64,000 bases of DNA, from assembly GCA_048013815.1 (NCBI GenBank), contig CM106585.1:8556001-8620000 (forward strand). Reading direction: 5' to 3'. The notes under the pieces are model-generated. The model did no database searches, was not told where the DNA came from, and worked only from the letters and a program-made list of their open reading frames with translations. Both the position numbers and the translations under genes were made by a program. Shown one piece after another: positions 57,259 to 64,000 of this stretch. Numbering within the stretch: position 1 is the first letter of the stretch; each line of letters begins with the position of its first letter. This stretch comes from Setoptus koraiensis (lineage: Eukaryota > Animalia > Arthropoda).

Positions 57259-59299
57259 TTAATACTTGATGAGGCCCTTGCGATGGGCTTCGTATGGAGT
57301 CAGTTTTCTGATGATTTTCTCGTCGCCAATTCTCTCCGTGATCTCTATAGGCTGCAACGGAGGCCTAAGGAAATCGATCTTAGCATCTATAAATTCGTCA
57401 TAACAATTATCATTGGCATCTTTGGACAGCTTGAAATAGCCTTGATGACCCCAGTGGTAACCATATGAGTTTCTGAACAACCAGTATTCCTGTCCGTCCT
57501 CTACGCCGTGCCCCACAAGTAACATAGAATGGTATGAGTTCTTTTGTCTGCAGTTGTGACCCTGATGCACTAGACCGCCATAGGCGGAAAAATCTTCTGG
57601 CACTTGTATAACCGCCATGGCAGGACCCGACAATTTCAAGATGGAAGGCCAGAGAGATCTGTGGTTTATCTCCTCATAACTGAGCACAACGGGCCTCTTG
57701 TAGCCAGCTCGATGCCAATCGTCTTTTTCATATGGGCAAACTGATTCTCTATTCAAGTAAGGGTAATCCATTCGCAATTCCATGCCCCAATCTCTGACAA
57801 ATCTTTCAATAGGTTCAGCGTCTGCTCCTCCGCAACCCTCCATACCGACATGCCGACCACAATCAACTACATACTGCTCGCTAAACGAAACCAATTTACC
57901 TGTTTGCTTACAATGCCACCACTCCATGAGAGACACCATCGCAAAAGCGTAACAACTCGCGCATTGACTTTGACTTCTAGGCACAGTTAGACAGCCGTCT
58001 TCGCGATAATCCAGATAAACCTGGTCCTTAGGCCAGTCGCCGACGTCACTCATGTAACCCAAACGGGTTCTCTTTGCCCTCCCCTCACTATTTTTCTCAC
58101 TCATCGCGTCAGTCTTTGCCCTTTTTTCTCCTATTATAGCATTTCCAGCGTTACTTTCACTGCCCATTAGCTGTGGTCCATCTTCACTCATAATTTTATA
58201 GTTGGAGTTATAATTTTCGCCAGCTGCGCTCTTCAACCCTTCACCTAAATCCTCCTGTTCCTCGTCGTCTTCACTCGTCATCCTCTTGAATGTATCAGCC
58301 AACCAGGTAAACTGTCGCTTAACATAGTCAACAGAGTTTGGAATTATCTCCAGCAATTTCAATTGTTGCTCCGTCAAGCCCTCTTCATTTCCATCAGTGT
58401 TCGCGGCTTGACTAAACAGCTCCAACGGTGTGTGTTCAGGATTTGTCGACGGTACCCGCTTTACGAACTTCTTACTCTCTTCCGGTTGCTCGCCATCAAT
58501 TAGAGATCGATATTCGTCGATTTTCATGTTGCTATTACGCTGTCTTCTATCTTGTCGTATGCTAGATTTTGACACTTGCTCCCAGCTTCTTTTCTTCGTT
58601 TTGCCGCCTCTGGCTGTCTCTCCATAATCATCGACATCCATTTTCTCGGATGATCCGACGTCTCGCTTCGATCTATGATAATCTATGGTTACTCGAAGTT
58701 GCTGAGCCAGCAGACGATAGCCAGGATGTTTGTCTGCGACAATGCGCGCCAGCATTTGTTCCAATCGTTCAAGGTCGAAACCAGTCAATGCTACCGACTC
58801 ATCATTTTGGCCATTGATCGGTTTCGATTCGCCTCTTAACTGCCTTCTGGGTTTTATACCAGAGTACATCCTTTTCAGCTCTTCCGGTGTACTGTCACTA
58901 AACTGATTGATACTCAAGAAATATTTTATTTTGCCCAACCTGAATGCCATATTGTGCAAGAATGTCTTGAGAGCACTAGCAATGAACAACTTCTTTCTGG
59001 CCAGCTCATCTCTGATTGTTGGATAGATCTTTTGGAAGGACGTCTTTACAGGGTGAACAGGAGGAAACGAAAAGCTAAATTAAGTGTTGCTAAATTATTC
59101 GACGTCAACAGTTGTACACTATACAATCAACGGTATGACTTACTTTGTAGCGATCCCATTCGAAGATCTTGGGCAATTGAATGCTCAGATTCTTCGGCTT
59201 GACGCTGGTTCCTTCGGCACCTGTCGGATGCCAATACGGAAGTGACAGTAGTATAAGGAGGCCAAAAAGCGCCAGCGCAGCGCGACAAGCTGAGCTCAT
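57259..59299 (-). CDS. Papain-family C1A (cathepsin L-like) protease copy 1, 646 aa, join(59299..59144,59043..57259)
   Basis: Signal peptide; 100-nt phase-0 intron AAA|GTAAGT..AAAG|ACG; I29 prodomain (WDRYK..FQKIY..E..R...F...HN...INQFSD); catalytic C (SQSQCASCYAF, 57954-57952), H (SYHSMLLVGHG) and N (YWLFRNSYG). Confidence 0.92.
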
Positions 59300-59520
59300 C
59301 TTTATTCTGTGGCTGTTGAGTTCGGTTTCTTTTCCTATCGAGGCTACTGAATTTCTGCTCCACGATTTTGTTTTGAACCAACAGAGTGCTACGTTTTATT
59401 ACCGCACTCACATCAGAGGATTAAGTGTGCCATCAGGTATTGCTCGTTATTCTTTCAGAAATTTGCTCTTCATCTATCTTCATGCATACACTCGCATAAG
59501 CAGTCATGAAATGCGAGCCG

Positions 59521-59690
59521 CGCACCACATCTTTTTTTTTGGTTCAATATATAAATATAACTTTATCGCATGTAGACAGTACGAAGAGAGTCCGCTCCCG
59601 AAATAGCGTTGATTTTTGGAGGCCCTCTCGATCATTTGGCAATGTCAAAATGGCATTGACGAAAATTCCCGAATGAATCGATTTGGTGCA
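59521..59690 (-). promoter_or_regulatory. Conserved upstream element of protease copy 1, with a TATA-like TATTTATATA
   Basis: About 170 bp matching 62273-62443 with 2 substitutions and 1 poly-T indel; TATA-like sequence about 250 nt upstream of the ATG. Confidence 0.55.
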
Positions 59691-59978
59691 AATCATTTGA
59701 ATGTGAGACAGACAATTGCGCTGATGGTGTTTATACCAATGCTATGGTTGGTGCTATGCTCGTTTCTGTGACAATGCATTCTGAGAAGTGGTTGCAATAA
59801 TAAGATCCTCTAGTTCGAAGTAAATGAGAACTTGTTACCTGTTGATGTCCGTTCATCGCAAGTTCCAAAAAACTGAATCGTCTTCCAATGACACAACTAA
59901 TGTATCAGCGGACACTTTAATTAACTAAATACATCTATTATCAGTACAGAATAGATCCTACAAGGGTAAAATTTACAA

Positions 59979-63137: not shown

Positions 63138-63480
63138 AGGAAATAAGCCATTGACCATCAACACCGTCTGGTCAATATTACTGCACCTAAAGGATATGCA
63201 GAGCCTAGTGTAGTGCTGAACCTAAATGAGAACTCATCCTGGAAAGGTTATAGTAACTAATGAACTAATGCTCACGATAATAACGATAAAAACAATAATA
63301 ACAGTGCTTACAATAATAACAATGACAAAATGATGATCACCTCGACTATTTATCTTCAATTTATTAAGAATTTTTCGTATAAATTTCAACCCGATTATTG
63401 CAAAAAGCCGGCAACGTGATTCGTTGATCAGTCTTTGAATAGTCTATCACCCATCAAAGCCAAACAAAAAAGATAGAAAA

Positions 63481-63738
63481 ATGGAAGAGACAAGAGAACA
63501 AAAAGTAAAACAGTCAAGAGAAAAGCTGCTAGAAATATTGCCGAAGAAGAGGCCGGAAGAGAGACCATTCACCCCCATTCAGGTTAATCAATTGGCCATG
63601 GCCTACATAGAGATGTTGGAGGCAATTATAAAAAGTAAAAAAGGAGTCGATGAGTTTATGGAAGAGATTGGCCCGAGAGGAGATACGGAGTTGTTTTCAA
63701 TGGAAGATTTGAAAGACCGCCTAGTTCGAAGTAAATGA
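63481..63738 (+). CDS. 85-aa charged helical ORF, possibly a chimeric fragment
   Basis: ATG ORF whose last codons (LVRSK*) fall in the flank duplicated behind each protease copy. Confidence 0.25.
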   Translation: MEETREQKVKQSREKLLEILPKKRPEERPFTPIQVNQLAMAYIEMLEAIIKSKKGVDEFMEEIGPRGDTELFSMEDLKDRLVRSK

Positions 63739-63898
63739 GAACTTGTTACCTGTTGATGTCCGTTCATCGCAAGTTCCAAAAAGCATGAATTATCTTCCAA
63801 GGATAACGGGTGATAACAAATAACTCAGCAGTCACTTTAATTAACTAAACACATCTATGATCAGTACAGAATAGATCCTACAAGGGTAAAATTTACAA

Positions 63899-64000
63899 TT
63901 AATATTTGATGAGGCCTTTGTAATGGGCTTCGTATGGAGTCAGTTTCTTGATGATTTTCTCGTCGCCAATCTTCTCCGTGATCTCTATAGGCTGCAAGGG
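63899..64000 (-). CDS. C1A protease copy 3, 3' end only (runs off window)
   Basis: PLQPIEITEKIGDEKIIKKLTPYEAHYKGLIKY*, with a downstream flank homologous to copies 1 and 2. Confidence 0.88.
   Translation of the reverse strand, partial: PLQPIEITEKIGDEKIIKKLTPYEAHYKGLIKY

Follow-up and report, generated by a model that had tools for sequence, protein, structure and literature searches.

A tandem array of secreted protease genes

The DNA analysed here is a stretch of 64,000 nucleotides (nt) of the Setoptus koraiensis genome (contig CM106585.1, positions 8,556,001 to 8,620,000), hereafter the window, the right end of which carries a tandem array of genes for putative secreted papain-like proteases with a very long insert in their propeptide. 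Two complete genes are found there, both on the minus strand, copy 1 (57259..59299; 646 amino acids, aa) and copy 2 (59979..62034; 651 aa), whose products are 82% identical. Both consist of two exons separated by a 100-nt GT..AG intron: in copy 1, exon 1 spans 59299-59144, the intron 59143-59044 and exon 2 59043-57259 (stop included), and in copy 2 the corresponding features are located at 62034-61879, 61878-61779 and 61778-59979. Exon 1 codes for the signal peptide and the first helix of the I29 inhibitor domain, and the long exon 2 for the remainder, i.e., the rest of I29, an insert of 273 aa (copy 1) or 276 aa (copy 2), the catalytic domain and a C-terminal tail. The original prediction, made from the letters alone, had already described this layout, with an insert of ~275 aa and a conserved tail of ~35 aa (40 aa by our measurement), and gene models, Pfam matches and catalytic residues agree with it in both copies.

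The splice that we propose joins FEWDRYK to TSFQKIY in phase and would yield a continuous I29 helix. In the alignment, the region spanning the junction is unbroken in two distant relatives, P0007 (FDFERFKAQFNRHY) and P0019. No joint skipping the intron was seen among the contigs of the three public runs that hold this DNA, which are fragmented, multi-copy and of DNA type.

A third copy is truncated by the edge of the window; its C-terminal tail is found at 63902..64000 on the same strand (repeat family D1), with 88-91% identity by tblastn to aa 614-646. The tandem repeat takes in the intergenic DNA, and copies 1 and 2 are spaced 2.72-2.75 kb apart. The distance between copies 2 and 3 is 3.9 kb (3.92 vs. 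2.72 kb) because the remnant of a Tc5/pogo-type transposase is located between them. The window genes are part of a longer tandem row. In the three public runs, summed contig depth where exon 2 begins is many times that of the flanks; it is not to be equated with copy number, but fits the presence of many near-identical copies. A contig from a relative (L001, 10.5 kb) carries four genes of the same family between 395 and 9121, three on one strand and one divergent, that are 37-54% identical to the window copies, so that tandem expansion is either shared or recurrent.

The enzyme and its I29 clamp

The catalytic domain of copy 1 (~aa 392-607; 57379..58026, minus strand) was delimited by Pfam, residue-level alignment and AlphaFold2 (AF2) modelling. 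The match to Pfam Peptidase_C1 (PF00112) has E values of 6e-40 and 6.5e-38 for the two copies, and among proteins of solved structure the closest are procathepsins L, K and S. Alignment to 2o6x identified the equivalents of papain Gln19, Cys25, His159 and Asn175, which are all present and invariant across the family. In copy 1 they are Gln410 (57970-57972), Cys416 (57952-57954), His557 (57529-57531) and Asn577 (57469-57471). By these residues we assign the window proteins, on sequence grounds, to papain family C1A as cathepsin-L-like enzymes. A peculiarity of the group concerns Trp26 and Trp177 (papain numbering), tryptophans that most papain-family enzymes have next to the catalytic Cys and beside the catalytic Asn. 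Both have given way to Tyr, within CYAF and NSY (at 57952-57954 and 57463-57465, and at the equivalent sites of copy 2); throughout the family relatives these sites are occupied by Tyr, His or Phe.

The putative signal peptide of copy 1 (aa 1-28; 59216..59299; copy 2, 61951-62034) was read from the sequence by eye. It has a basic n-region, a hydrophobic core (AALALFGLLILLSL) and small residues at -3/-1, and is likely cut after TGA. The I29 domain follows directly (aa 29-112; 58864..59215, interrupted by the intron), as delimited by hidden Markov model (HMM) alignment to the propeptide of Fasciola procathepsin L1. Of its two motifs, GxNxFxD is kept as SINQFSD and ERFNIN is reduced to D-R-F-S-T-N. 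Pfam I29 is detected in the relatives, and its identification in the window proteins rests on the HMM alignment and on the agreement of their predicted fold with proenzymes. The ratio of nonsynonymous to synonymous substitutions (dN/dS) between the copies is 0.22 for the catalytic domain and 0.11 for I29, and both are therefore under purifying selection.

We have run AF2 on the exon-2 product. In this model the enzyme and the 40-residue tail have a predicted local distance difference test score (pLDDT) of 85-98 and I29 one of 80-88. The model superposes on procathepsins L1, S, L and K over 272-283 residues with Z scores of 29-30, and mature enzymes align to it over ~210 residues (about 213); the I29 clamp is therefore modelled as in ordinary zymogens. 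About 12 propeptide residues past I29 also superpose on procathepsin L1, compatible in the model with the position of the strand that crosses the cleft in procathepsin L. At the other end of the protein, the C-terminal extension (~aa 608-646, ~40 aa; 57262..57378 in copy 1) is 93% identical between copies, has no cysteines and is predicted to form a beta-hairpin and a helix (pLDDT 85-90). Its motif RKL(T/S)PSEA..KG is common to the relatives P0001, P0003, P0006 and P0018, and no sequence match to the tail was found beyond the subclade of the window copies.

The insert contains two conserved blocks

I29 ends at ~aa 112 and the mature enzyme starts at ~aa 386-392, the insert taking up the space between them. 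Compared with Pfam at E values of up to 5 the insert gave only noise and no known domain, and a profile of it against the sequences of the PDB gave nothing below an E value of 1.2. Protein-atlas features led no further than to I29 or C1 clusters and an unnamed arthropod cluster of 588 aa. We do not take the insert for an unrecognised intron, the frame being open in both copies and in more than 20 relatives, with all insertions and deletions in frame.

Most of the insert is predicted with a pLDDT below 50, apart from two blocks that are kept between proteins merely 27-34% identical overall. One is a helix pair (aa 143-168, LERLEQMLARIVADKHPGYRLLAQQL; 58696..58773) in which Pro-Gly is nearly invariant in the family (consensus L..I...PGY.EIA.EL across relatives) and whose helices have a pLDDT of ~70. 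The other lies downstream of an RSKR motif, where the conserved segment reads KKFVKRVPSTNPEHTPLEL. What we call the docking segment (aa 242-264, SKKFVKRVPSTNPEHTPLELFSQ; 58408..58476; copy 2, 61143-61211) is found here, the part of the insert with the strongest conservation and the highest model confidence, and it bears the family motif RVPS(N/T)NPxYxPxEL. In the relatives the block S.K.V.RVPS(N/T)NPxYxPxEL.S begins ~65 residues after the R-x-K/R-R column, and its Asn and Glu are invariant in the 13 sequences (13/13) of the alignment concerned (A3). The dN/dS of the conserved insert blocks is 0.14-0.23.

In the full model, three bins of ten residues that cover the conserved block have pLDDT values of 74, 93 and 75. 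When the fragment following RSKR was modelled without I29, the block still reached 90 (vs. 93 with I29), so that docking on the catalytic domain is predicted to need no help from I29. The original prediction had held that cleavage at RSKR removes the inhibitor. This appears too simple: if the conserved segment stays docked without I29, as modelled, a cut at RSKR alone would not free the enzyme.

The region between the conserved block and the enzyme is of a very different nature. In the window copies this hypervariable acidic/basic stretch (~aa 305-391; 58027..58287 in copy 1) is only 60% identical, with 22 in-frame gap codons, a dN/dS of 0.63 and a pLDDT of 31-38, in line with the high divergence noted in the original prediction. 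In the relatives the corresponding region is unalignable, acidic or basic, and from a few to ~130 residues long. The composition of the insert as a whole is 16-18% K+R and 18% D+E. Contigs of other public runs jump 97 nt, which is not a multiple of three, within the hypervariable stretch (joints 58164>58262 and 58167>58265); this skip is probably a paralogue or allele with another linker length.

Convertase motifs and gene conversion

Two furin-type motifs are found in each insert, RSKR (aa 176-179; 58663..58674; copy 2, 61398-61409), which is a candidate proprotein-convertase site, and RAKR (aa 374-377; 58069..58080; copy 2, 60795-60806), located by motif scan ~15-20 residues N-terminal of the catalytic domain. 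Shuffling the inserts gave an expectation of 0.3-0.4 for R-x-[KR]-R vs. the two observed in each (P ~0.04). RSKR is predicted at the end of a helix ahead of a disordered stretch. Its column reads R-x-K/R-R (RRKR, RSKR, RTKR, RIKR, RRRR or RQKR) in 10/22 aligned relatives, and all but one of these ten (P0018) sit in the distant subclade described below. P0007 has only a dibasic KR there (AARMKR), with Ala at P4. A convertase substrate would be expected to show R-x-K/R-R in an exposed, position-conserved site of a secretory protein, all of which applies to RSKR. Because the motif recurs at the same column in these relatives, RSKR is a credible ancestral convertase site. RAKR is found in the two window copies and in none of the 22 relatives examined.

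The distant relatives carry particular weight here. Between the window copies, the number of synonymous substitutions per site (dS) is 0 over aa 113-160 (58720-58863 vs. 61455-61598, minus strand). The remaining segments of the insert, as far as aa 306, have values of 0.13-0.37, and dS rises to 0.52 for the catalytic domain and to 0.97 for the signal peptide. Such near-identity, even at silent sites, of the N-terminal two thirds of the prodomain points to recent gene conversion, and the tract, as delimited by these sequence comparisons, is confined to the prodomain. Agreement of motifs between the two copies is therefore no evidence of constraint, and since they have been converted, the case for constraint on RSKR rests on the distant relatives only. 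Of the motifs that the original prediction had described as kept in the insert, RSKR is borne out by its column in the relatives; the agreement between copies reflects conversion, and KTKKR is not conserved in the relatives.

A previously unnamed family

In order to find relatives, we searched 1.84 billion representative proteins with a profile built on the insert alone. Seventeen proteins matched, and those checked by Pfam or alignment all show the order I29, insert, C1A (a 71-aa fragment, P0024, falls outside these checks): a signal peptide, I29 at ~50-110, 80-220 extra residues and Peptidase_C1. A second profile search added further members, giving a family of ~30 proteins with inserts of ~80 to 276 aa. 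All the members are unnamed and come from raw or unannotated Logan, ENA or JGI assemblies; word-index searches and a cluster look-up returned no named relative either, only unnamed proteins from these same sources. The profile searches recovered an unnamed family, not a known widespread prodomain, and the remark in the original prediction that no described family was known to have this layout agrees with the lack of any Pfam or solved-structure match to the insert. A published I29-insert-C1A layout with a convertase site was not found in the literature searched, the coverage of which is incomplete. Judged by sequence and architecture, the window genes define a previously unnamed family with an unusual domain order.

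In a phylogeny restricted to the catalytic domain, the proteins with the insert are set apart from the others by a branch supported by 99% in the Shimodaira-Hasegawa-like approximate likelihood ratio test (SH-aLRT); the outgroup consisted of the canonical enzymes returned by the searches and not of a curated arthropod set. Two subclades are apparent. One contains the window copies, P0001-P0006, P0017 and P0018, and all its members with a complete C-terminus (P0001, P0003, P0006, P0018) carry the C-terminal tail. The other, deeper one contains P0007, P0008 and P0019-P0033.

Comparison with known cathepsins

The closest known systems are the procathepsin L, K and S zymogens, in which the canonical cathepsin L-type link between I29 and the enzyme is roughly 20-30 residues long. 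The window proteins share with them the catalytic Gln/Cys/His/Asn, the fold, the signal peptide and an I29 clamp with GxNxFxD. They differ in the length of this link (273-276 residues), in the presence within it of a convertase motif and of what is modelled as a separate conserved docking segment, in the reduced ERFNIN, in the Tyr at positions 26 and 177 and in the 40-aa C-terminal tail. Extra C-terminal pieces on cathepsin-L-like enzymes are found in cruzipain, Leishmania CPB and plant RD21 (a granulin domain in the latter); unlike these, the tail of the window proteins has just 40 aa, is cysteine-free and has no match outside the subclade. Cathepsin F also combines a cathepsin-L-like enzyme with a long prodomain, the extension being a cystatin-like domain and linker N-terminal to the propeptide inhibitor. 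This N-terminal position, which is seen in the beetle cathepsin F rows of a published alignment (PMC4336737 supplement 2), sets it apart from the window proteins.

The insect 26/29-kDa proteinase (26-29-p, CtsK1), a secreted enzyme of ~550 aa, matures the immune protease Persephone and carries a 26-kDa prodomain to which no function has been assigned (PMC5823974; PMC11760918). Like the window proteins it is cathepsin-L-like and has an unusually large prodomain. The Tribolium 26-29-p has its extra sequence, which starts MRMLFKSV...YTVKGILYIPY, ahead of I29, with at least 114 residues before the point where ordinary propeptides begin, and the C-terminal half of its I29 ends ~30 residues before the mature domain, at ~residue 346 (PMC4336737 supplement 2). 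In contrast, in the window proteins I29 directly follows the signal peptide and the extra region is C-terminal of it. None of PSNNP, PSTN, FSEQY and SCYAF occurs in the beetle cathepsin alignment (PMC4336737 supplement 2), and no named 26-29-p was among the insert-profile matches in the 1.84 billion representatives. Given the reversed domain order and the missing family motifs, we do not place the window genes in this group.

Among mites, Aculops lycopersici has a lineage-specific C1A expansion (OG0006384) among its predicted secreted proteins (PMC7738191), and cathepsin L genes of Tetranychus urticae are more highly expressed in feeding stages (PMC3407033). These expansions resemble the window genes in that small plant-feeding mites have multiplied genes for secreted papain-family enzymes, in tandem or in a lineage-specific manner (PMC7738191). 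An insert between I29 and the enzyme is not mentioned in the text searched (PMC7738191, PMC3407033).

A proposed two-part propeptide and its alternatives

The reading towards which we lean, if only modestly, is that these genes encode tandemly expanded, lineage-restricted, secreted cathepsin-L-like zymogens that are processed by a convertase and have a propeptide in two parts. The propeptide would have been pulled apart into a signal peptide, a normal I29 clamp, a spacer with the conserved helix pair and the R-x-K/R-R site, followed by an extended segment (KKFVKRVPS[T/N]NPxYxPxEL) that would bind the catalytic domain on its own, and a disordered, fast-evolving acidic/basic linker that would lead to the enzyme and its 40-residue tail. 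A furin-type proprotein convertase of the secretory pathway would cut RSKR, so that the I29 clamp and the second binding segment, presumably placed in the active-site cleft, come apart and inhibition is weakened. In the two window copies it might also cut RAKR, just ahead of the mature domain. On its release at neutral pH the enzyme could then already be active or primed, with no need of acid auto-activation in the lysosome. If its role is indeed extracellular, digestion in the gut lumen or in saliva appears most likely.

Several observations weigh against this scheme. P0001-P0006 and P0017, to which the window copies are most closely related, have lost R-x-K/R-R, which is therefore not essential in that subclade, and RAKR, confined to two copies, may have arisen by chance in a region rich in K and R. 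No clear docking position emerged from the Foldseek and VIA-align tables for the post-RSKR model, and the AF2 input alignments were shallow (20-24 sequences). A search of public runs for this DNA found the three sets of genomic contigs and no RNA run. Finally, Tyr stands in for both Trp26 and Trp177 in the predicted enzyme.

The loss of R-x-K/R-R in nearest relatives that nevertheless kept the genes would suit a plainer explanation, in which these are ordinary acid-activated cathepsins L of the gut or lysosome whose linker has drifted into a long, disordered, low-complexity spacer with unused basic motifs. The pLDDT below 50 over more than half of the insert, its charged composition and the many in-frame insertions and deletions would be expected from such drift. 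The conservation of two insert blocks in proteins with so little overall identity, their low dN/dS and the retention of the R-x-K/R-R column across the deep subclade would not, and we regard this explanation as doubtful. Unlikely, too, is that the proteins are polyproteins, in which two convertase cuts would give an I29 fragment, a middle fragment of ~200 aa that would act independently, for instance as a free inhibitor or in signalling or binding, and the protease. The bracketing of the middle part by R-S-K-R and R-A-K-R in both copies, and the presence within it of the best conserved non-enzyme motif of the family, are what such an arrangement would predict; yet the second site is absent in every relative, about half of the middle fragment is predicted to be disordered, insert length in the family varies widely (~80 to 276 aa), and a conserved segment that is modelled bound to the enzyme is a better fit to a propeptide role.

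The original prediction went in another direction, proposing that the cut at RSKR frees a protease bearing nuclear localization signals (NLSs) that saliva would carry into plant cells, where it would enter the nucleus of the host by import. The signal peptide, the intact enzyme and a good, conserved convertase motif are compatible with it, and a secreted cysteine-protease effector is described in a plant nematode in a preprint (bioRxiv 10.1101/2024.07.01.601533). The basic clusters are also real and lie where the prediction had placed them, KRAK...RAKRTR at 58125-58063 in copy 1 and KRRK...KKR...RAKR at 60851-60795 in copy 2 (both minus strand, by motif scan), as does RSKR. However, a classical NLS should be conserved in orthologues and rise above the compositional background, and these clusters do neither: they have a counterpart in 0/22 relatives, the nearest included, they belong to the fastest-evolving, disordered stretch of the protein, and K[KR]x[KR] occurs at chance level (2 and 1 vs. 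0.56 and 0.79 expected from insert shuffles, P 0.1 and 0.55). Moreover, RAKR lies inside the clusters, so that its use would send the basic residues away with the propeptide and leave an enzyme without any NLS-like sequence. The fragment following RSKR would also retain the segment modelled as bound to the enzyme. The basic clusters are recent, unconserved features and probably not nuclear address labels, and we consider the nuclear route very improbable.

Returning to the two-part propeptide, a more far-reaching version of it can be envisaged, in which the split inhibitor (I29 clamp plus enzyme-binding strand) would be a hitherto undescribed means of gating a papain-family enzyme and allow a serine convertase of the secretory pathway, and not acid pH, to arm the protease, and in which the gene arrays of plant-feeding mites would serve to secrete such enzymes into the food source, in saliva or for extra-oral digestion. 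This we offer as a speculation that has rather more against it than for it. It is normally acid pH or legumain that activates cysteine cathepsins, and an old, position-conserved convertase site together with a separable enzyme-binding segment would amount to a different control logic for a well-studied class of enzymes. The family is invisible to current annotation, its relatives all being unnamed proteins of raw assemblies, and the expansions of secreted C1A genes in small herbivorous mites had been noted earlier and not dissected. If truly salivary or extra-oral, these enzymes would be candidates for acting at the plant-mite interface; as gut enzymes they would still explain a large lineage-specific gene expansion.

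Neighbouring features

The transposase remnant between copies 2 and 3 (62454..63137, plus strand) matches Pfam DDE_1 and Transp_Tc5_C, i.e., a Tc5/pogo-type DDE transposase, and lies outside the protease genes. Between it and copy 3 there is an 85-aa open frame on the plus strand (63481-63738, MEETREQKVKQSREKLLEILPKKRPEERPFTPIQVNQL...) with no Pfam match. On the other side of the two genes, 468 nt past the stop of copy 1 and on the same strand, an open frame of 320 aa (55829-56791, minus strand), also with no Pfam match, begins with a signal-peptide-like sequence (MTKNRVIQLLLFGLLLFSAIPKTAHA). The G+C content of the non-genic DNA in the window is 37-41%.

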